From IMG/VR virus record IMGVR_UViG_3300048121_001678, positions 233,165 to 297,164 of that record: a stretch of DNA of 64,000 bases; one strand, written 5' to 3'. Below are positions 1,299 to 34,611 of this stretch, one piece after another. Position 1 is the stretch's first letter; every line of letters starts with the position of its first letter. The notes under the pieces were generated by a model, which had not been told where the DNA came from, searched no databases, and saw nothing but the letters and a program-made list of their open reading frames with translations. The position numbers and the translations under genes are program-made.

Positions 1299-1688
1299 GG
1301 GGGTGAATGGAATTGATTGGCAGGGTCAGTTGCACGGGGCACGTAGTGAGATGTTATCTATCACTTTAATCTATGATGGCAATTTTGTAATCGGCGAAAC
1401 TTTCGCAAAACTTCAGGCAGTAGGTCTCCTACGTACTGAAGAAGTAGCTGTAGCGTAAGACGTTAACAGTGAATCGGGTCGGTCAGGACATGTACCTATG
1501 AACAGAAGTCCGTTGTTGTGGTGGAAAAACGATTAAACCCTAAATTGAGTCGTACATCTATTGGTGATAGAGGATGTAAAAATTCAATCACATATTTCGG
1601 AACATTGTGAACTAATGTTGACCTAAACGTGTAGTCCTTTGTAGGTGGACTGAACAAGACGCGGGTTCGAATCCCGCCACCTCCACCA
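1299..1688 (+). ncRNA. ssrA: tmRNA; tag ORF 1393-1458 encodes GETFAKLQAVGLLRTEEVAVA*
   Basis: 5' GGGGGTG pairs with 3' CACCTCC-A-CCA with a G3.U70 alanine determinant; T-arm GCGGG-TTCGAAT-CCCGC; 390 nt; resume context gtaatc-GGC. Confidence 0.93.
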
Positions 1689-3280: not shown

Positions 3281-4045
3281 TTATAACCCCTTATCTCTTT
3301 TAATGTCATCATCGGTTGGTTCGGTTAATGAGTTACCCAAATCCTGAAATCTAGACTGACCTGTATAATCAATTTTAGTTGCAATTGCAGAAATATTAGA
3401 AATAAACATCTCTCTTATATCTGAACGGGGGTGAGAGGAAATTACTGATGATAAAAATTCATCACTAACAATTACATTCTTTTTAAGTTTTGGTAAGTGC
3501 TGTTCAACTAATTTTTCAATACCGGCTCTTTTAATAATGTAAGTATGTGTGTTATAAAATGCAGATGGTCTAATAAAGTGTTTCTTACCAATCCTTTTAC
3601 TATCAATTAGTTTTTTAAAAATTCTGTGTAATGAATTGTGTGACATTAAGCAAAGGTCCCATTCGTAGTCATCCATTTCGTCGAATATTGACCAATCTAT
3701 TGGTATACGAGGGATAAAATCATCTTCTAAAATCATAATAGTATTGTAACCATTCTTATGAGCGTCCTCCCAACACCGAGTATGTGAAATCATTCCACCC
3801 GCTTCACCATATGTTGTCGGTCTATTCCAAAAATCATACTTAATTTTACTCTCAGGTAGTTCCCATCCTTTATACAGGGTATATTCATCACCTTCCTCTT
3901 TAATTAACCTTTTTCCCACATAACCCTCAAACACTTCAACATCACAACCAAATGGTAATGGTAACATCTCAGCTCTCTGAAGTAACTCCTCAATATATTC
4001 TTTTCTGTGGTCAATAGAAATAATGTAGACTTTATCGATATACAT
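3281..4045 (-). CDS. Glycosyltransferase family 25
   Basis: VYIISI..RK, GEAGGMISH..CW, ILEDD motifs. Confidence 0.85.
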   Translation of the reverse strand: MYIDKVYIISIDHRKEYIEELLQRAEMLPLPFGCDVEVFEGYVGKRLIKEEGDEYTLYKGWELPESKIKYDFWNRPTTYGEAGGMISHTRCWEDAHKNGYNTIMILEDDFIPRIPIDWSIFDEMDDYEWDLCLMSHNSLHRIFKKLIDSKRIGKKHFIRPSAFYNTHTYIIKRAGIEKLVEQHLPKLKKNVIVSDEFLSSVISSHPRSDIREMFISNISAIATKIDYTGQSRFQDLGNSLTEPTDDDIKRDKGL

Positions 4046-4133: not shown

Positions 4134-5015
4134 TTATAAGGACATTAACATGTCCAATAACTCTTGTTGTGGGAACATATCCACTTTATCTTTACGGGTG
4201 TTTGTGTGTGTCCACAAACCTTTAACCTTACCGTAGTATGCGTCCTCATTCCATTCGAATGCATCTGCACCTTTATCTTTAATCAATGATGGTAATCCTG
4301 CTCTAATATCAATACCGTCTCTATCACCAATCCATAATATCCACTTTCTTAACGCTTCAATTTGTTCGTCAGAATAACGATGCCACGTTTTGTGACCTCT
4401 AAATTCTTTATCAAGTGTAACTATTTGTGACTCAGCAACAGATGTTCCAGCATATGTTTTACCATTCTTAATCCATCCAAAGTTACAAACCTCAATGGCA
4501 ACTGAGTTAACGTGCATCTTTTGTGAACCATTTTTACCTAAGTGCCAACCGTAATTACCTTCAGGGAAAGCTTGTACCATTACACCGTCATATGTGTCAT
4601 CATTACCCTTTACTGATTGACCACCCAGTACAAATTCCGTGGCAACTGCACCTCTACTGTCTCTACCCCACGAATCAATACATTTATAAGGATTATTCCA
4701 ACCTGCAGTGTGGTGTAAAAATAACCATTCAGGTTTAATTGGACCTTCTTTATATTCACCCTTAGGTAAAAAATGTTGGTTTATCATCAAACCATTATCA
4801 GTGGTATAAGACTGTTCAGAATTATCTGTAGTTGCTAGACCCATTGCGTCCCAAGTTTTTGGACCTACTATCCCGTCAGAAACCAAACCATTATCCATTT
4901 GCCATTTTTTAACAGTTAACTCTGTACCTTTACCAAAAATACCATCGGTAGTTATATTGAAGAATTCTTGTAGAGTTTTCACTTCTTTACCTCTTGAACC
5001 TATTTTTAAAATCAT
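4134..5015 (-). CDS. Endolysin: peptidoglycan-binding domain plus N-acetylmuramoyl-L-alanine amidase (Amidase_2)
   Basis: LKIGSRG.EVKTLQ..DGIFG.GT..DGIVGPKTW; LHHTAG, WH.G, H(T)N..K.D zinc ligands. Confidence 0.88.
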   Translation of the reverse strand: MILKIGSRGKEVKTLQEFFNITTDGIFGKGTELTVKKWQMDNGLVSDGIVGPKTWDAMGLATTDNSEQSYTTDNGLMINQHFLPKGEYKEGPIKPEWLFLHHTAGWNNPYKCIDSWGRDSRGAVATEFVLGGQSVKGNDDTYDGVMVQAFPEGNYGWHLGKNGSQKMHVNSVAIEVCNFGWIKNGKTYAGTSVAESQIVTLDKEFRGHKTWHRYSDEQIEALRKWILWIGDRDGIDIRAGLPSLIKDKGADAFEWNEDAYYGKVKGLWTHTNTRKDKVDMFPQQELLDMLMSL

Positions 5016-5107: not shown

Positions 5108-5599
5108 ATGAATGTAGTATTAGTCCTAAACTCAGACTTTACACCACACAACGTAACAACATTACGAAGAGGTTTTGTATTAGTGGAAAAAGGTAAAGCT
5201 GAGATATTGAAAAAAGGTGATGATATAATAACAACATCAGGTAACTTTGTTAGACCCTTAGTTATTCGATTAGTTAATTATGTTAGATATCGAGCAAGGA
5301 ACTTAGGTGTGAACCGTAAACGACTATTTAAAAGAGATAGATACCAATGTGGTTATTGTGGTTCTAAAAATAATTTAACAATCGACCATATAATTCCTAA
5401 ATCCAGAGGGGGGTTAAATACTTGGGATAATTTGGTGACATCATGTTTTAGATGTAATAGTATTAAGGATAATAAAACACCTTCAGAAGCGGGAATGAGA
5501 TTAAGGATTAAACCTTATACACCCACATTATTCTCACGTGTTATCGACGATACTGTTGAGTCAATATGGGAATCATTTAAAAAAGAAGTGTTTAAATAA
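5108..5599 (+). CDS. HNH endonuclease (McrA-like)
   Basis: RDRYQCGYCG..LTIDHIIPKSRGG..WDNLVTSC..CN. Confidence 0.9.
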   Translation: MNVVLVLNSDFTPHNVTTLRRGFVLVEKGKAEILKKGDDIITTSGNFVRPLVIRLVNYVRYRARNLGVNRKRLFKRDRYQCGYCGSKNNLTIDHIIPKSRGGLNTWDNLVTSCFRCNSIKDNKTPSEAGMRLRIKPYTPTLFSRVIDDTVESIWESFKKEVFK

Positions 5600-12061: not shown

Positions 12062-12379
12062 ATGAATAAAAACCAATTAATTATTGAAGACTATGATATT
12101 TTCGATACTGAATTATCTGTATATTTCTCAGTTAATCAAGAGTTAGACGTTAGAGAAGGTATAATAGATATCGATGAATTAGATACATGGCTTGAAAGTA
12201 TGGGACATTATGAGATGTCTGAAGATTGTTGGGATTATGCTACTGAATCACATTACACCAAAGATTGGACTATAGATTTTTATGAATATAAATCAGAGTT
12301 TTTAAGTGTCGACGACATAGTTGAGTTTACACATGATTATTATAAAGATAAAGCATTACCAAATTTTGTGGAAGAATGA
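12062..12379 (+). CDS. Acidic hypothetical protein
   Basis: 105 aa; ATGA overlap with the epimerase gene. Confidence 0.65.
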   Translation: MNKNQLIIEDYDIFDTELSVYFSVNQELDVREGIIDIDELDTWLESMGHYEMSEDCWDYATESHYTKDWTIDFYEYKSEFLSVDDIVEFTHDYYKDKALPNFVEE

Positions 12380-13014
12380 AAATACTATCAACGTCATTAG
12401 ATAACGTATATTTAATTGAAGAATCCGTACATAAAGATAATCGAGGATATTTTATGGAGACTTGGAATGAAATGGGATACTCATCAAAGAATCTTATTAA
12501 TGATTTATCCGTCGAATGGGCAGTAAAAGATGATGGGACAATGAATTCAACCTATTTTGTACAGGACAACCTATCCGTATCACATAAGGGTGTTTTTAGA
12601 GGACTTCATTACCAAACTGACATAAACGGACAAGCAAAACTAGTGAGGGTCCTGAAGGGGTCTGTAGTGGACTTTGTGGTGGATTTACGTGAGATGTCAG
12701 ACACCTATGGTAAGTTCGAGTATTTCGAATTAAATGATACGAATAATCTATCATTATTTGTACCACCGTACTATGCACATGGTTTCTTATCACTGAAAGA
12801 CGATACTATATTCACATATAAATGTGGTAATTACTATAATAAAAATTCAGAAGGTAGTATTGTTTATTCTGACCCAATCATTAGACACGTAAATGACTAT
12901 AGTCAAACAATAAAAGACGTAATTGATTTCTATCACCCTTGTGAAAGTGAAGATGATTTATTACTTTCGTATAAAGATAAACACGCACCTAAATTCTTAA
13001 AACGTAAATATTAA
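12376..13014 (+). CDS. rfbC: dTDP-4-dehydrorhamnose 3,5-epimerase
   Basis: DNRGYFME, FVQDNLSVS.KGVFRGLHYQ, QAKLVRV..G.V.DFVVDLR, AHGFL motifs. Confidence 0.93.
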   Translation: MKILSTSLDNVYLIEESVHKDNRGYFMETWNEMGYSSKNLINDLSVEWAVKDDGTMNSTYFVQDNLSVSHKGVFRGLHYQTDINGQAKLVRVLKGSVVDFVVDLREMSDTYGKFEYFELNDTNNLSLFVPPYYAHGFLSLKDDTIFTYKCGNYYNKNSEGSIVYSDPIIRHVNDYSQTIKDVIDFYHPCESEDDLLLSYKDKHAPKFLKRKY

Positions 13015-23066: not shown

Positions 23067-24923
23067 ATGAATATATTAGGTATACATACGGGACATGATG
23101 CATCACTGTCATTAATAATTGACAATAAATTAGTCGCGGCAGTTTCGATGGAAAGGTTTTCAAGGGTGAAAAAAGATTGGATTATTGATAGAGAAAATTT
23201 CGATAGATTTTTAAGGTCTTGCAATGTAACACTTGACGACATTGATTATGTATCTATGGGATATTGGAATAATGATAATATGGATTTCTGTAAATTATAC
23301 TCACCAAAAGATGAAAAATACCCGTTATCAACATATAATCGAGTGCACATGGAAATTCCATTGATTAATAATATTAAGTCGTACTTTCAGGATAAACCAT
23401 GGATAGATGAAATAGAATTTCACGAAGGTAAAGGTTATACTCTACCACGAATGATTGACCGTATAAGACCACCTTTTTCTTCAAGTGACATATCACACTC
23501 AAATGCGTTTAAGATAAACTTCGTAATTGATGGATACGATAGAATCATTCCAGGGTATTTTGTTGACCATCATATTTCACACGCATCTTCATCATATTTC
23601 ACATCACCTTTTAACAAATCATCTATATTCACTGTTGACGCATCCATGCATGAACCATCATCGTGTAGTGGGTATTTTTGGGCACATGAAAATACACTTA
23701 ACATATTGAGAGGTGCTGGTTATACCTATGGTAATTTCTATGATGTGGCTACAGAGTATTGTGGTGTTGGACCAGGGACAACTAAAGCCGGTACGTTAAT
23801 GGGATTATCATCATTTGGTAATATTAGTAAAAAGGCTCAAGATAATTGGGAATGGTGGACAAGACCTTTTGACCAACGGTCAGGTACTGAAGATTCACAC
23901 TATAATGATTGGTTATTCTTACAGATTTCAGGTAAATACCCTTATGTATCATCAATTAGACCTGAAATTGAAAATAAAGAACCAGGTTACGAACATTATA
24001 ATAGAGAGTATCAAATGGTTTACACTAAAAAAGACGTTGACACTCAAGAAGTAATGGACATTGCAGCCGATATTCAGTTTATTGCTGAAAAGTCATTAGT
24101 TAAATATGTTGAAGACCTTTATAACGAGACCCATACTATATGTGACGATAATTTATGTATTGCAGGTGGTACTTTTTTAAACTGCAATGCTAACTACAAA
24201 ATCGCCACTGAAACTTCTTTTAAAAATATACATATATTTCCAGCGTGTGGTGATGATGGAATAAGTGTTGGGTCATCTCTTTATGTTTTACATGAAATAT
24301 TAAATATTGAACGTACTACTTACACTAACAGTGAAATTTCTTATTTAGGGTTTCAATACATGTATCAACCAAAAAGTAAATTTGAGTCAATAGATTACAA
24401 TGTTAATACCGTAGCAAAAAGTATTAGTGAAGGTAAAATCATATGTTGGTATCAAGGAAGGAGTGAATTTGGTCCAAGAGCGTTAGGTAATAGGTCATTT
24501 ATTTCAGACCCAAGAAAGAAAGAAATGAAAGACCAATTAAATAGTCGAGTTAAATTTAGAGAATGGTTTAGACCATTTGCACCCGTAGTTTTAAATGAAC
24601 ATAAAGAAGAGTGGTTTAATATGGATTTTGAATCTCCGTTTATGTTATATACTGTACCTTGTAAGAGACCACAGGACATACCTTCGGCAGTACATATAGA
24701 TAACACATCAAGGGTACAAACACTAAAAAAAGACGATAATGAAGAGTTCCACGAACTAATCGAAGAATTTTACAAAATAACTGGAGTACCAATAGTAATG
24801 AACACATCATTAAACGTTAAAGGACAACCAATTGTTGAGACACCTGAAGAAGCGATGGAGTTATTTGAACAATCAAATGTCGATATTCTTGTGATTAATG
24901 ATAAGATGTACTTTAAAAACTAA
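23067..24923 (+). CDS. Carbamoyltransferase (NodU/CmcH family)
   Basis: GHDASL, HHISHA, GTLMGLSSFG, GG.FLNC, DDGISVG, GRSEFGPRALGNRS, REWFRPFAP, NTSLN. Confidence 0.93.
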   Translation: MNILGIHTGHDASLSLIIDNKLVAAVSMERFSRVKKDWIIDRENFDRFLRSCNVTLDDIDYVSMGYWNNDNMDFCKLYSPKDEKYPLSTYNRVHMEIPLINNIKSYFQDKPWIDEIEFHEGKGYTLPRMIDRIRPPFSSSDISHSNAFKINFVIDGYDRIIPGYFVDHHISHASSSYFTSPFNKSSIFTVDASMHEPSSCSGYFWAHENTLNILRGAGYTYGNFYDVATEYCGVGPGTTKAGTLMGLSSFGNISKKAQDNWEWWTRPFDQRSGTEDSHYNDWLFLQISGKYPYVSSIRPEIENKEPGYEHYNREYQMVYTKKDVDTQEVMDIAADIQFIAEKSLVKYVEDLYNETHTICDDNLCIAGGTFLNCNANYKIATETSFKNIHIFPACGDDGISVGSSLYVLHEILNIERTTYTNSEISYLGFQYMYQPKSKFESIDYNVNTVAKSISEGKIICWYQGRSEFGPRALGNRSFISDPRKKEMKDQLNSRVKFREWFRPFAPVVLNEHKEEWFNMDFESPFMLYTVPCKRPQDIPSAVHIDNTSRVQTLKKDDNEEFHELIEEFYKITGVPIVMNTSLNVKGQPIVETPEEAMELFEQSNVDILVINDKMYFKN

Positions 24924-25114: not shown

Positions 25115-25690
25115 ATGAAATTATTTAGTTACAATAAAAATTCTTTAGAATATAATAAAGTGAGAGTACTACCATATATGTTACTTTTTATTATTTTAAT
25201 ATTACTAAGCTATATGTATGGTTTTTTAGAGGGTAGAGAAGATAAAATTATAAAACTCACACCTCAAGAAAAAGAATTAATCTTAATTAATGTACAAGAC
25301 ACATCATTAACATTTAGTGAGGAAAAACTAATTTCACTAATGAATGAATTAAATATTAAGTTTCCTCATATAGTGTTAGCTCAGGCGAAAGTCGAGAGTG
25401 GTAATTATACTTCTAAAATTTTTAGAGAAAACCATAACCTATTTGGCATGAAGGAGGCTCGTGTAAGAATTCACACAGCACAGGGAACACAATTTAACCA
25501 TGCCTATTATAATACATGGAGGGAATCTGTGTATGATTACGCATTCTATCAATGTAGATACCTGTCTAATATTAACACTGAAGACGAATATCTAAGTTAT
25601 TTAGGTCAATCATACGCAGAGGCAACTAATTATGTGTCTATATTGAAAACAATGATAAAGAGAGAAAAACTAAGAGAAAAGTTTAACTAA
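25115..25690 (+). CDS. Glucosaminidase/muramidase (FlgJ-like GH73) with N-terminal TM anchor
   Basis: LAQAKVESG..NHNLFGMK; YA.A..Y. Confidence 0.8.
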   Translation: MKLFSYNKNSLEYNKVRVLPYMLLFIILILLSYMYGFLEGREDKIIKLTPQEKELILINVQDTSLTFSEEKLISLMNELNIKFPHIVLAQAKVESGNYTSKIFRENHNLFGMKEARVRIHTAQGTQFNHAYYNTWRESVYDYAFYQCRYLSNINTEDEYLSYLGQSYAEATNYVSILKTMIKREKLREKFN

Positions 25691-27357
25691 TGGTAATAAT
25701 AGGTTTATCGCATGGTCATGATGCAGGTGCAACACTTTTTAAAGATGGTGAAATTATAGTATCAATATCAGATGAGAGGTTGACTAGAACAAAAAAAAAT
25801 TACGGATTTTTTAGTAATGTGATTGCAACTAAATCAATTGATTATTGTTTGGAGTACTCTAATTTGTCCATTGATGATGTGGATTATATTTTTTTTAACA
25901 CCACAAACCCAAAACCCGATGTGTTATATTGTTTAAAATATTATTATAATATTGATAGTAATAAAATAATATATGTGACACATCATTTATCACACGCAGC
26001 ATCATCTGTTTTCACTTCAGAATTTGAAGATGTTGTTATAGTGGTTTCTGATGCATTAGGTGAGGACCCCATTTATGGGGACTATGGTTGGAGGTCATTT
26101 GAAGAAAAGGGTTTTAATTTAGTTGAACACGAAGATATAGAAAGTAGTTTCGGTGAGGGGTGGTCTATATACCATTATAAAAATGGTGAGTTTTTTAATT
26201 TAGAAAAAAAATGGGTAGATAGTAATGGTCAGTTTAAACAACTAAAAGATTGTTCGATAGGTTACCTATATGAATGTGGGACAGAACAATTAGTTGGTGG
26301 TATAACTATTGGTAGTGCTGGTAAATTAATGGGATTAGCATCATTCGCGGATAAAGATTGGGTTTCAAAACAAGAAAGAAATCACAAAATTATTTATGAT
26401 AATTTATCTATCAAAGGTGAATTATTTTATCCTGAAATTAATCATAATAGTCCATTTCAAATAAAGTCAAACGTTGCGGGGTTATACCAAAGAGAACAGG
26501 AGGAATGTTCTCATTTTTTAGTTGAGAAATCTAAAAAATTAAGTAATAGTAATAATATTACAGTTGCAGGTGGTTCATTTTTAAATTGTACAACAAACAG
26601 TAATATTGTGAAATCCAACTTATTTGAATCTCACCATTTTTTCGCATCGTCTGACGACTCAGGAATATCTTTAGGGTGTGCTTTATACGGGGCATATACT
26701 ATGAGTAGTGTTAATCGTAAAAAATTCTTTAGTCCTTATTTAGGTAGAGAATATAGTAGAGAAGAAATTTTAAATGAATTAGAAAAACACAATTATTTAA
26801 ATTACAATGAAATAACCGATTTTACACAATTAACAGATATAGTCACTAACCAAATAATAGATAATAAAATTATTGGTTGGTTCCAAGGTAGAAGTGAAAT
26901 AGGTCCAAGAGCGTTAGGTAATAGAAGTATATTGGCAAACGCATCGACTCCATGGATTTCTGACTATATTAATGGCGAGATTAAAAAAAGAGAATGGTAC
27001 AGACCATTTGCACCTTCAGTATTATATGAGTATCAGTCTGAAATATTTGATTTGGATTATTTTTCACCTTATATGTTACTAACCGCTGAAGTAAATACCG
27101 AATGGAGAAACAAAATACCATCAGTAACACATATAGATAATACCTCAAGATACCAATCAGTAACTAAAGATACTAACGAAAGGTTTTATGATTTGATAAG
27201 TGAGTTTAATAATAAGACAGGTATACCTCTACTCTTAAATACTAGTTTTAACGGACCAACAGAACCAATAGTTGAGTCACCAAAAGACGCTATAAATACA
27301 TTCTTAGAGGTGGGTTTAGATATTTTAGTAATTAATGATTTTGTAATTACAAGATAA
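25690..27357 (+). CDS. Second carbamoyltransferase (NodU/CmcH family)
   Basis: GHDAGA, HHLSHA, GKLMGLASF, GRSEIGPRALGNRS, REWYRPFAP, NTSFN. Confidence 0.93.
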   Translation: MVIIGLSHGHDAGATLFKDGEIIVSISDERLTRTKKNYGFFSNVIATKSIDYCLEYSNLSIDDVDYIFFNTTNPKPDVLYCLKYYYNIDSNKIIYVTHHLSHAASSVFTSEFEDVVIVVSDALGEDPIYGDYGWRSFEEKGFNLVEHEDIESSFGEGWSIYHYKNGEFFNLEKKWVDSNGQFKQLKDCSIGYLYECGTEQLVGGITIGSAGKLMGLASFADKDWVSKQERNHKIIYDNLSIKGELFYPEINHNSPFQIKSNVAGLYQREQEECSHFLVEKSKKLSNSNNITVAGGSFLNCTTNSNIVKSNLFESHHFFASSDDSGISLGCALYGAYTMSSVNRKKFFSPYLGREYSREEILNELEKHNYLNYNEITDFTQLTDIVTNQIIDNKIIGWFQGRSEIGPRALGNRSILANASTPWISDYINGEIKKREWYRPFAPSVLYEYQSEIFDLDYFSPYMLLTAEVNTEWRNKIPSVTHIDNTSRYQSVTKDTNERFYDLISEFNNKTGIPLLLNTSFNGPTEPIVESPKDAINTFLEVGLDILVINDFVITR

Positions 27358-30394: not shown

Positions 30395-30511
30395 ATGAAA
30401 GAGAAAGTATTAAAATATAACAACGACTGGAAAGGTCGTAGAATATACGAAGAGAATAAAAAGAAAGAGTTGGTCAATAAGACTAAAACCTTTAACACCA
30501 AAGAGAGATGA
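30395..30511 (+). CDS. Cassette micro-ORF ending FNTKER
   Basis: 38 aa MKEKVLKYNNDWKGRR..TFNTKER*. Confidence 0.55.
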   Translation: MKEKVLKYNNDWKGRRIYEENKKKELVNKTKTFNTKER

Positions 30512-30639
30512 GTGATAAAAATAAAGAAACAGAGATGTTAAGAGCTTCATTAATGAAGAAAGTTAGTGAACTAAATGATAATGAAATTATATCTTTATAT
30601 GATGACTTATCTGAATTCTTTAACACCAAAGAGAGATGA
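30508..30639 (+). CDS. Cassette micro-ORF (43 aa), copy 1
   Basis: MSDKNKETEMLRASLMKKVSELNDNEIISLYDDLSEFFNTKER*. Confidence 0.7.
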   Translation: MSDKNKETEMLRASLMKKVSELNDNEIISLYDDLSEFFNTKER

Positions 30640-30767
30640 AAAGATATTGGAATAAATTCCTCAACTTCATATTACCAAATAGAAGAGAGAGGTTACTTAT
30701 TGAAATAATGAAACGAGACCAAGATTTGGGTCTCTATGATGAAACCTTTAACACCAAAGAGAAATGA
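30636..30767 (+). CDS. Cassette micro-ORF (43 aa)
   Basis: MKRYWNKFLNFILPNRRERLLIEIMKRDQDLGLYDETFNTKEK*. Confidence 0.65.
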   Translation: MKRYWNKFLNFILPNRRERLLIEIMKRDQDLGLYDETFNTKEK

Positions 30768-31045: not shown

Positions 31046-31098
31046 TAGTCAAAGTGTTTTGATTATCACATATTGAGAAATTTTAACACCAAAGAGAG

Positions 31099-31230
31099 AT
31101 GAGTGATACAAATAAAGAAACAGAGTTGTTAAGAGCTTCATTAATGAAGAGAGTTAGTGAACTAAGTGATAATGAGATTATATCTTTATATGATGACTTA
31201 TCTGAATTCTTAAACACCGAAGAGAAATGA
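31099..31230 (+). CDS. Cassette micro-ORF (43 aa), copy 2 of 30508..30639
   Basis: MSDTNKETELLRASLMKRVSELSDNEIISLYDDLSEFLNTEEK*. Confidence 0.7.
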   Translation: MSDTNKETELLRASLMKRVSELSDNEIISLYDDLSEFLNTEEK

Positions 31231-31484
31231 ACGAAGTAGAAATCTTTATCAACCGTCTCAAGAAAATTGGTATTGAGCTTGAGTTAATGGGTAATCTACC
31301 TTGGATTTACTTACACAAAGTAGATGGTAATAGGGTACAACCTGAAGATTATAATGCTAATCACGGTTACACTATTGCTTGGTACCCTGTTAGAGTGGAC
31401 CAAAAGATACATCTTGATAGTAATTTGAAACGAACCTTTGAAGTAATTAGAAAATACAAATCCTTTAACACCAAAGAGAAATGA
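31227..31484 (+). CDS. Cassette ORF (85 aa)
   Basis: Ends KSFNTKEK*. Confidence 0.7.
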   Translation: MNEVEIFINRLKKIGIELELMGNLPWIYLHKVDGNRVQPEDYNANHGYTIAWYPVRVDQKIHLDSNLKRTFEVIRKYKSFNTKEK

Positions 31485-32177: not shown

Positions 32178-32749
32178 AACATCTGATAGTTGTCGGCCAC
32201 CCAAATAAGGAATCCTTTTGTCATAATGGAATTTATAAAACCATTGTAGATACATTAAAAAGTAATAATCAGGACTATACGACCATCGACTTATATGAGG
32301 ACAAACTCCATAGAAATAAATTGGACCTTATCAAATATTATCAGGATAAAGTAAAAGAGTCCACTCACATTTATTTTATCTCACCAGTATGGTGGTTTAG
32401 AATGGTTCCGAAGATGGAGACATTCTTTGATGAGGTTTTTACACCAGGATTTGCATATAAGTTTGTCCCTATCATTGGAAAGTATGCGTACCCTAAACCA
32501 TTTTTAAAAGATAAGAAGGTAAGAACATACATTACCCACGGAGCACCTATGTTACCGGTAGTTACATTATATCTTAACTCTGTAAAGTTAAGATTGGTGA
32601 TGGGTGTTTATACATTTGTATTTGGATGGAAACCTTCACGATGGTTAAAGACAAAACAATTTTGGTCTGTACCTTTTGTCACCGATGAAAAGAGAAAAAA
32701 ATATCTACGTGTCGTAGAGAAAGACATTAAAAGAGACCTTAAATGTTAA
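32174..32749 (+). CDS. NAD(P)H-dependent oxidoreductase (flavodoxin-2, KefF/NQO-like)
   Basis: LIVVGHP..SFC, PVWWFR.VP..FFDEVF..GFAY. Confidence 0.88.
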   Translation: MKHLIVVGHPNKESFCHNGIYKTIVDTLKSNNQDYTTIDLYEDKLHRNKLDLIKYYQDKVKESTHIYFISPVWWFRMVPKMETFFDEVFTPGFAYKFVPIIGKYAYPKPFLKDKKVRTYITHGAPMLPVVTLYLNSVKLRLVMGVYTFVFGWKPSRWLKTKQFWSVPFVTDEKRKKYLRVVEKDIKRDLKC

Positions 32750-33159
32750 CAATACCTGAATACGATAAAATCCAAGCATATGAAAACTCTTACCATATTG
32801 CTGTAGACTTTGATGGTGTAATATGTGAAAGTACCAAAGGATTCCATGACGGTACAGCATATGGAGAACCAATTAAGGACACTATTGACTCCATTAAAGA
32901 ACTATATAATAAGGGATTTACTTTGGTAGTATTCACAGGTAAGGTTAAAAAAGACCGACCAAATATAGGTGGTAAAACAGGTTTAGAAATTGTTGAAGAG
33001 TGGTTAGTAAAATACGACTTACTCAAATACTTCAAAGAGATTACTAGCGACAAACCAAGAGCACTTATTTATATTGACGACAATGGTTATCGTTTTGATA
33101 ACTGGAAAAACACATTAAAATTCATTGATAATATATCAAATACAGAAAAAAATAATTAA
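32743..33159 (+). CDS. HAD-like phosphatase
   Basis: IAVDFDGVI, FTG, KP.ALIYIDD. Confidence 0.8.
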   Translation: MLTIPEYDKIQAYENSYHIAVDFDGVICESTKGFHDGTAYGEPIKDTIDSIKELYNKGFTLVVFTGKVKKDRPNIGGKTGLEIVEEWLVKYDLLKYFKEITSDKPRALIYIDDNGYRFDNWKNTLKFIDNISNTEKNN

Positions 33160-33161
33160 TT

Positions 33162-33518
33162 ATGAAAGAAAATGAGATGTACTCCCTTTTAGAAATACAG
33201 TACTTAAAGGGAAGACTAGATGAATTACATAAAGCAATACCTACCATCACTAACATGGACCGTAGTCGTAAGTTAGATGTTAGACTTCAAAAATATTACG
33301 AAAAACTTAAGTCTGTTTCTGAATTAGCCTATCACCTATACCAAGTGGAGAGACAAAACCAGATGATATCTAAAGATAAAAACAAAAAGTTGATGAACCA
33401 ATTACTGTTAGAAGTATCAACAGTACTGACCTCAGTATCAATAAATACACCAACTGTCGATGAGTATGATATTACAGAACTATTAGACAGAATTAAAAAA
33501 CAAATAGAAAAATACTAA
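33162..33518 (+). CDS. Hypothetical helical protein
   Basis: 118 aa ORF. Confidence 0.65.
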   Translation: MKENEMYSLLEIQYLKGRLDELHKAIPTITNMDRSRKLDVRLQKYYEKLKSVSELAYHLYQVERQNQMISKDKNKKLMNQLLLEVSTVLTSVSINTPTVDEYDITELLDRIKKQIEKY

Positions 33519-33527
33519 ATAAAAGTT

Positions 33528-33695
33528 ATGTTCGGACTATTCAAAAAGAAAACAAAAGAAGAAATACTTCAAAAAAAATACGATAAATTAATTGACGAAT
33601 CATATAAATTATCCACAATCAATAGAGCTAAAAGTGATGAAAAAGCTTTTGAAGCCAATGAAGTTTTAAAACAAATAGATAATTTAACAGAATAA
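33528..33695 (+). CDS. 55 aa protein resembling the flavobacterial Lacal_2735 family (not in the ORF track)
   Basis: MFGLFKKKT..LQKKY..LS..NRAKSD.K..EA..VLKQI; family recalled from memory. Confidence 0.7.
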   Translation: MFGLFKKKTKEEILQKKYDKLIDESYKLSTINRAKSDEKAFEANEVLKQIDNLTE

Positions 33696-33721
33696 TTGTT
33701 GTTAGTTTAAATTTTTTAACT

Positions 33722-33759
33722 TACATTTGTTGTGTTGAAAGACAAAAAGTTATTTGAAA
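33722..33759 (+). promoter_or_regulatory. Host-type promoter and boxA-like element for the tRNA operon
   Basis: TACATTTG (33722-33729), GTTATTTGAAA (33749-33759). Confidence 0.55.
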
Positions 33760-33818
33760 TGTCGGAAAGAATTTAGTACCGATGCCGCTGTGGTGGAATT
33801 GGTAGACACGAGGGACTT

Positions 33819-34490
33819 AAATAGTTACCACGTATGACTTTTCTATACTTTGATACTATTTATAGTTATGAAAGTAACAGATGAAGAGATAATAGAAGCA
33901 TGTGAGTCTGAATTGACTATGTCACGTGCAGCAAGTAAACTAAAGATTCACTTTAACACACTTAAGAGGAGGGCAGTTTTACTTGGAGTTTATAAACCTA
34001 ACCAATCAGGTAAAGGAACTAATAAACGACACAATGGTAGTAAATTACCTTTGAATGAGATTTTAAAAGGTTTACATCCACATTATCAAACTAATAAGTT
34101 ACGACATAGACTTATAAAAGAAGGTATCAAAGAAGAAAAGTGTGAAGTCTGTGGAATCACTGAATGGTTAGGTAAAAAATTAAGTTTTGAATTAGACCAT
34201 ATTGACGGTGATAGAACTAATCATAGATTAGAAAATATTAGAATAATATGTCCTAATTGTCATTCACAGACAGAAACATACCGAGGTAAAAACACTTGAG
34301 TGCACGAAGAGAAATCTTTGATGTAGAACCTCTCAAATTCGGGGAAACCTGTAAAATGGCAATCCCGAGCGAAGCCCGAAAGGGAACGTGTAGAGACTTA
34401 ACGGGAGGGACCCTAACGTGAAGACGAGGGTTAAGAGAAAGTCCAGACCACAAACATCATATGATGGCAACGAAAGTTGTAGTTGGTACG
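33819..34490 (+). mobile_element. Group I intron (cyanobacterial/plastid tRNA-Leu IC3-like) with an HNH ORF in L1
   Basis: Insertion after U34, terminal G; IGS GAGU at 34298-34301; P3 CCUCUC/GGGAGG; P4 UUCGGG/CCCGAG; R GUGUAGAGACUUAA; P8 CCCUAACGUGAAGACGAGGG; S AAGAGAAAGUCC. Confidence 0.9.
33868..34299 (+). CDS. Intron-encoded HNH homing endonuclease
   Basis: N-terminal HTH-like; CEVCG..ELDHIDGD..N..LENIR.ICPNCHSQT; stop codon overlaps the IGS; own TATTTAT at 33857-33863. Confidence 0.88.
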   Translation: MKVTDEEIIEACESELTMSRAASKLKIHFNTLKRRAVLLGVYKPNQSGKGTNKRHNGSKLPLNEILKGLHPHYQTNKLRHRLIKEGIKEEKCEVCGITEWLGKKLSFELDHIDGDRTNHRLENIRIICPNCHSQTETYRGKNT

Positions 34491-34611
34491 AAAATCCCTT
34501 GGACAGTAATGTCCGTGGCGGTTCGAGCCCGCCCAGCGGTACGATAGATAGGGAGTTATCCAATACTAGTTGGAACTAGATAACTTTAAAAAAGAACCCT
34601 ATCTTTTACAT

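Follow-up and report, generated by a model that had tools for sequence, protein, structure and literature searches.

Can the group I intron of tRNA-Leu(UAA) genes, generally treated as an ancient and ORF-less element, be mobile, and do phages carry such mobile copies? We addressed this question with a locus from a marine jumbo phage. The window analysed here is a 64,000-nt (64-kb) stretch of the 297-kb IMG/VR contig IMGVR_UViG_3300048121_001678. It encodes a head maturation protease, an endolysin, a tRNA cluster and a tmRNA, and runs that contain it are seawater metagenomes. DNA searches against 50,697 deposited phage records found no close relative of the window. Only 6 of 71 ORFs in the window have a Shine-Dalgarno-like site, suggesting a Bacteroidota-like host. 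The initial annotation described a cyanobacterial-type tRNA-Leu(UAA) intron with an HNH gene in its P1 loop, and inferred that it is mobile and homing-competent. The observation is confirmed and comparative evidence supports the inference, although both splicing and homing remain inferred and ‘cyanobacterial-type’ proves too narrow a label.

An interrupted tRNA-Leu(UAA) gene

Positions 33784–34541 (plus strand) contain a type-II tRNA-Leu(UAA) gene interrupted by a 672-nt group I intron. The 5′ exon (33784–33818) reads GCCGCUG-UG-GUGG..CAC-G-AGGGA-CUU and comprises the acceptor 5′ strand, the D arm, the anticodon-stem 5′ strand, and C32-U33-U34, ending in ...GGGACUU. The 3′ exon (34491–34541) starts AAAAUCCCU and comprises A35-A36 and the anticodon-stem 3′ strand (within AAAA-UCCCU), a long variable arm, the T arm, the acceptor 3′ strand (CAGCGGU), and the discriminator A73, without an encoded CCA. 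Joining the exons at ...GGGACUU|AAAAUCCC... gives a tRNA with the anticodon loop CU-UAA-AA. ARAGORN with default settings misses this gene. With intron search enabled, ARAGORN finds a split type-II tRNA at 33784–34542 with a 670-nt intron, but places the junction 1–2 nt off and therefore calls it tRNA-Ser.

The intron (33819–34490) lies between U34 and A35 and ends in the omega-G at 34490. Its boundaries follow the U|...G| rule and match those of about 125 homologous introns. A local scan of 951 nt against Rfam matched RF00028 (group I intron) at 34278–34465 with 67.8 bits (gathering score 50, E 7e-17) over the full model (1–253). Notably, scans of the whole window at both the gathering and the E-value threshold do not report the intron, which probably explains why such genes go unannotated. 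The internal guide UUGAGU (34296–34301), which is also present in relatives, forms the 3′ strand of P1. It pairs with exon ACUU plus intron AA, with a U.G pair at the splice site.

We assigned the remaining helices by hand from the Rfam alignment and from relatives, and examined pairing in a MAFFT alignment of 98 distinct homologous trnL introns. P2 (34305–34320) is a hairpin with a GAAA loop. P3 (34329–34334 with 34403–34408) encloses P4-P5 (34339–34368), P6 (34369–34389) and the 5′ strand of P7 (34392–34398). P8 (34410–34431) is followed by J8/7 and the 3′ strand of P7 (34440–34444); P7 contains a bulged A. P9 (34447–34450 with 34484–34487) precedes the omega-G and includes the hairpins P9a (34455–34466) and P9b (34467–34480, GAAA loop). 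P3, P4 and P6 are paired in 90–98 of 98 sequences and P7 in 91–96 of 96, with two to five standard pair types at most positions. P2 and P9b likewise covary. However, P5 has only two clear pairs, and P8-inner, P9 and P9a are poorly aligned, so that P9 and P9a are less certain. No P10 is evident. For the Anabaena intron, exon pairing in the anticodon stem is reported to be required instead (Zaug et al. 1993, cited in PMC3984707), and the anticodon-stem pairing of the exons probably stands in for P10 here as well.

An HNH open reading frame in L1

The ORF at 33868–34299 encodes 143 aa and lies entirely between the two strands of P1, i.e., in L1. Its TGA stop codon (34297–34299) is inside the internal guide. 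The product matches Pfam HNH (PF01844) at 24.5 bits (cut-off 21.4) and PHROG 10822 ‘HNH endonuclease’ at 4e-34. More than 1000 homologues exist in the protein collection searched. In an alignment of 51 of these, the catalytic residues H111, N123 and H132 and the zinc-binding residues C92, C95, C128 and C131 are invariant. Moreover, dN/dS is 0.12 relative to the 95%-identical copy at the related phage locus L439 (loci compared here are numbered with the prefix L), indicating purifying selection. An AlphaFold2 model (pLDDT 89) predicts an N-terminal three-helix, HTH-like domain, a flexible linker, and a C-terminal strand-strand-helix unit with strands at 108–111 and 124–127 and a helix at 129–132. 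Foldseek searches of the PDB returned only weak matches to HTH domains and to HNH nucleases; those to McrA, Cap5 and Gme HNH were all weaker than E 0.001. A sequence search against PDB chains likewise found no meaningful relative, including among solved HNH homing endonucleases.

The ORF is preceded by a leader (33819–33867; ..ACCAC-N-TGACTTTTCT..TATTTATAG..ATG) whose first two A's pair in P1. This leader is 46/49 identical in L439. A conserved form (..TA[G/A]ACAC..TGATT.TTTTTCT..TGTC.TATATTTAT..ATG) precedes homologous HNH genes in L1, in L6 and in free-standing positions. The initial annotation had assigned the ORF its own TATTTAT motif, which is only partly confirmed. TATTTAT is part of the conserved leader, but the exact string around it is not enriched in the window (10 matches against 10.25 expected). 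A sigma-70 scan gave nothing convincing upstream of the ORF, and the leader region does not fold better than shuffled sequences (z −0.68). The ORF lacks a Shine-Dalgarno site, but so do 65 of 71 ORFs in the window, and this absence is therefore uninformative.

Distribution of trnL(UAA) introns and of the HNH family

ORF-less trnL(UAA) introns are common in viral contigs. Of the candidates in phage contigs, 49 have a tRNA-Leu(UAA) 5′ half 43–47 nt upstream, so they are ORF-less introns of about 200 nt. A 735-kb deposited ‘huge phage’ has one too. In bacteria, about two thirds of the candidates have a tRNA-Leu(UAA) 5′ half just upstream, and these come from Cyanobacteriota and also from Acidobacteriota, Bacteroidota, Alpha- and Gammaproteobacteria, Chloroflexota and Bacilli.

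The HNH family occupies many positions around this same tRNA gene. Among the 80 best viral-contig relatives of the HNH, nearly all lie in tRNA clusters. Full-length relatives down to about 50% identity mostly lie inside a trnL(UAA) intron or 4–80 nt from a tRNA-Leu(UAA) gene, whereas more distant relatives sit beside tRNA-Tyr or other tRNA-Leu genes. The ORF is in L1 in the window, L438–440, L133, L017, L448 and L449. It is in L6 in the sense orientation in L126, L128, L026 and L380, and in the antisense orientation in L051, L352 and the frameshifted L348; L348, L352 and L380 are MAG copies. Free-standing genes lie 4–22 nt upstream of an intronless trnL(UAA) (L129–L132, L134, L140, L175 and L176) or 45–80 nt downstream of an intronless trnL (L127, L157, L159, L163, L165 and L441). 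Others lie upstream (L136, which is syntenic with the intronless L134) or downstream (L015 and L037) of a trnL with an ORF-less intron. In the isolated T4-like phages Edwardsiella PEi20 and Aeromonas avDM4, an unannotated homologue lies 15–16 nt from tRNA-Leu(UAA).

Evidence for mobility

Comparisons among phages indicate that intron similarity is decoupled from flank similarity. The L439 phage has flanks 76–85% identical to the window, but its tRNA-plus-intron region is about 92% identical and its ribozyme 96–97% identical, in a tRNA with different acceptor, anticodon and T stems. Conversely, the L449 phage has flanks 92–99.5% identical to the window, but its tRNA plus intron is only 78% identical. 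L069 is an ORF-deleted copy of the L449-type intron. It lacks positions 543–975 of L449, which hold nearly all of the ORF, but keeps 31 nt of the leader and the last 17 nt or so of the ORF. L463 is a second such copy. The ribozyme of L128 is 91–92% identical to that of the window, yet its HNH (67% aa identity) sits in L6 rather than L1. Intronless alleles with the same 27-nt anticodon-arm sequence occur in more than 113 viral contigs.

In the HNH tree, the window and L439 genes are sister to the L6 pair L126/L128 (85/78), L133 groups with a free-standing gene (96/87), and L017 falls in the other major clade. Holding all four L1-located genes as one clade is rejected (AU p 2e-7), but holding window, L439 and L133 together is not (p 0.157). 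Only two independent L1 invasions are therefore statistically supported by the protein tree. At least five switches between intronic and free-standing positions are needed.

We propose that this element is a group I intron of the IC3-type tRNA-Leu(UAA) family that carries an HNH homing-endonuclease cassette in L1. In this model, the tRNA cluster is transcribed, the ribozyme (34296–34490) folds, and P1 forms across the 470-nt L1. GTP attacks after U34, the omega-G docks, and the exons are ligated into tRNA-Leu(UAA). The HNH would be translated from the precursor, the excised intron or a transcript of its own, using the conserved leader. Because the stop codon lies in the guide sequence, a ribosome finishing the ORF and formation of P1 exclude each other on one RNA molecule. 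In mixed infections, the HNH would nick or cut an intronless trnL(UAA) gene of a related phage, and repair from the intron-bearing allele would copy the intron in. Over time, the ORF is lost by deletion and introns are re-invaded, also at other loops. The near-identical intron in a more distant phage, the divergent allele in a closer one, and the ORF-deleted copies are the pattern expected from such a homing cycle.

We consider this model well supported, but splicing, the cleavage target and the way the ORF is expressed are inferred; the target is inferred only from gene neighbourhood. The 470-nt insert inside P1 could slow folding. Notably, the anticodon-stem bases next to the intron differ between the window and L439 despite the near-identical intron, so no co-conversion tract is visible there, which is unexpected after recent homing. 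Free-standing copies next to intronless trnL genes also show that the nuclease does not need the intron in order to persist.

Alternative interpretations

It remains possible, though less likely, that the nuclease acts mainly as a marker-exclusion weapon for which the intron is a shelter. In this view, it targets the trnL(UAA) region of competing phages, as free-standing phage endonucleases do. The intron splits the target site in the phage's own gene and offers a phenotypically neutral place for the nuclease gene (collaborative homing), so that classical intron homing would be a by-product. Many close homologues are indeed free-standing, immediately beside intronless trnL(UAA) genes (e.g., L127, L129–L132, L134, L441, PEi20 and avDM4) or genes with ORF-less introns (L015, L037 and L136). 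However, this reading overlaps with the homing model rather than replacing it. The ORF is inside the intron in the window, and the two were inherited together in L439, L448 and L449. Moreover, free-standing copies next to intronless genes show that self-protection does not require the intron.

It is unlikely that the intron is a vertically inherited, immobile relic with a decaying HNH passenger. The absence of visible co-conversion between the window and L439, and the large excess of ORF-less over ORF-bearing introns, favour this view. However, the low dN/dS, the invariant catalytic residues, the incongruent intron and flank similarities, and the different positions of one ORF family in nearly the same ribozyme all oppose it. 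Decay products such as the L348 frameshift and the L069 deletion also look different from the window copy.

A role of the ORF product chiefly as a maturase is more doubtful still. Some intron-encoded proteins, apparently mostly of the LAGLIDADG type, can act as maturases, and the long L1 might call for help with folding. Nonetheless, free-standing homologues outside any intron keep the same conserved residues, the nuclease active site is invariant, and ORF-less and ORF-deleted introns persist. Finally, although the window is a metagenomic contig, an assembly chimera is effectively refuted: both exons and a complete ribozyme flank the ORF in the correct order, the architecture occurs with 77–95% identical proteins in independent assemblies from JGI and ENA samples, and the exact L1 arrangement recurs in about eight metagenome contigs, some of them the same records as the loci named above.

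Relation to known introns and endonucleases

The intron shares its host gene, its insertion site and a compact P1-P9 core with the trnL(UAA) introns of cyanobacteria and plastids, including the P7 and P8 sequences noted in the initial annotation. It differs in its phage host, in its signs of recent lateral movement, and in its HNH gene, as none of 242 catalogued trnL intron entries contained an ORF (Haugen et al., PMC1995217). The ribozyme is 68–97% identical to those of related phage trnL introns. In a 103-sequence ribozyme tree built on 206 columns, the cyanobacterial introns form one clade (100/100) on a long branch. That clade and the phage group of the window, L439, L128 and L126 lie on one side of a branch with 89/90 support, and other phage introns come next (85/85). 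The bootstrap had not fully converged and sampling was biased by the search motif, so this placement is a lead rather than a result. trnL(UAA) introns are also known outside cyanobacteria in the large sulfur bacteria Beggiatoa and Thiomargarita (PMC4853749). Those are chromosomal and were described as ORF-less, although the MAG copies L348, L352 and L380 carry the HNH in L6.

The tRNA-fMet group I intron of Synechocystis PCC 6803 also lies in a tRNA anticodon loop and encodes a homing endonuclease specific for the tRNA gene, I-Ssp6803I (PMC1995217, PMC3984707). However, it occupies a different tRNA on a bacterial chromosome, and I-Ssp6803I is a PD-(D/E)XK nuclease rather than an HNH. Phage group I introns with HNH endonucleases in a peripheral loop include those encoding I-HmuI/II (SPO1/SP82), I-TwoI (Twort), I-BasI (Bastille) and I-TevIII (RB3) (PMC1995217), all of which interrupt protein-coding genes. 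Hausner, Hafez and Edgell (2014, PMC3984707) state that all phage introns observed to date are in protein-coding genes, despite many phage tRNA genes. In our literature searches, which did not extend to most subscription journals and so cannot exclude prior description, we found no report of group I introns in phage tRNA genes or of an ORF-bearing trnL intron.

The free-standing members of the HNH family resemble free-standing phage homing endonucleases such as SegF, MobE and T4 SegB; SegB is reported in the T-even tRNA region (PMC13096335) but is a GIY-YIG enzyme. Their occurrence beside intronless or ORF-less-intron trnL genes matches the steps proposed to lead from a free-standing nuclease to an intron-borne one, probably those of the Bonocora-Shub pathway for formation of mobile introns. 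Here, one nuclease family is seen at every stage and in three different intron positions.

Implications

It is tempting to speculate that phages are a main reservoir and vector of the ‘ancient’ tRNA-Leu(UAA) intron. Endonuclease-driven copies circulating in phage tRNA clusters may have seeded the cyanobacterial, and hence plastid, intron and the scattered copies in other bacterial phyla, or were seeded by them and then spread them. The same data would then also capture, within one nuclease family, every step by which a free-standing endonuclease turns an immobile intron into a mobile one, with independent invasions of L1 and L6. The evidence does not exclude this reading, but we regard it as tentative.

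More directly, the locus contradicts the published generalisation that phage introns avoid tRNA genes, and an apparently undescribed, broader population lies behind it. Because standard tRNA finders and whole-genome Rfam scans miss these genes, phage tRNA-Leu genes are likely under-annotated. A free-standing nuclease, an ORF-less intron with a neighbouring nuclease, a nuclease in L1 or L6, and ORF deletion together offer a natural series for testing how mobile introns form. The trnL(UAA) intron is the textbook case of an ancient, ORF-less intron thought to be inherited vertically from cyanobacteria to plastids, and whether it ever moved laterally has long been argued without a known mechanism. 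This window, with its relatives, provides a candidate mechanism, an HNH homing nuclease tied to trnL genes, and a vector, phages with tRNA clusters.

Gene content of the phage genome around the tRNA-Leu gene

The phage encodes a tmRNA at window positions 1299-1688 on the plus strand, identified by both Rfam (82.5 bits) and ARAGORN. Notably, its predicted tag, GETFAKLQAVGLLRTEEVAVA, does not end in the usual ..LAA, and the 5′ end of the tmRNA overlaps the end of a 397-aa minus-strand ORF (142-1335). Two paralogous Nol-like carbamoyltransferase genes are encoded on the plus strand at 23067-24923 and 25690-27357 (PHROG 1601, E 1e-119 and 1e-109). Together with a dTDP-4-dehydrorhamnose epimerase (12376-13011) and a glucosyltransferase-like ORF (3281-4042), these resemble a sugar-modification gene set. 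A BLAST comparison of the window with itself also revealed a 150-nt direct repeat (30491-30640 and 31082-31231) that is 94.7% identical. Across the whole window, only 6 of 71 ORFs of at least 120 aa have a Shine-Dalgarno-like site, and upstream regions are A/T-rich, as in Bacteroidota and their phages.

Comparison with related phages indicates that the region upstream of the trnL gene is an indel hotspot. About 1 kb of the window (32729-33781, compared with 363-475 in L449), holding three small ORFs (32743-33159, 33162-33518, and 33528-33695), is missing from the relative L449, which is otherwise 92-99% identical. The L438/L439 relative instead has a serine hydroxymethyltransferase gene just upstream of its trnL. 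The window also contains a second, unrelated HNH endonuclease ORF on the plus strand (5108-5596; PHROG 16726, 2e-33), next to a minus-strand endolysin (4134-5012). In another relative, L448, the homologous HNH and endolysin lie directly beside the intron-bearing trnL gene, so the tRNA gene sits in a different neighbourhood there.

Related endonucleases and introns in other phages

Homologs of the intron-borne HNH are also found in the deposited genomes of isolated T4-like phages. Edwardsiella phage PEi20 (L442, 1201-1632) and Aeromonas phage avDM4 (L443, 1201-1611) each have an unannotated full-length HNH ORF, 47-49% identical to that of the window, 15-16 nt from tRNA-Leu(UAA). At L139 and L161, which are loci with a free-standing HNH, a fragment resembling only the 5′ half of a tRNA-Leu gene lies about 60-100 nt upstream of the HNH, which is followed by an intact tRNA-Leu(UAG). 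This fragment may be a scar of an endonuclease-mediated rearrangement. In L026, a copy in which the HNH ORF is carried in L6, the ORF is preceded by a near-consensus sigma-70 promoter (TTGACA, 17 nt, TATAAT) inside the intron, at intron positions of about 100-145.

One phage trnL(UAA) intron carries a different endonuclease type: the 861-nt intron of L123 (IMGVR_UViG_3300010368_000011) contains a 196-aa LAGLIDADG-like ORF inserted between P7 and P3′. In the marine podoviruses L002 (KT997847.1, 1472-1657) and L003 (Pelagibacter phage HTVC120P, 1464-1654), the major capsid gene is annotated as two CDSs, and the gap between them matches the window's intron core at 81-86% over 72-78 nt. This gap is probably an unannotated group I intron of the same subfamily in a capsid gene.
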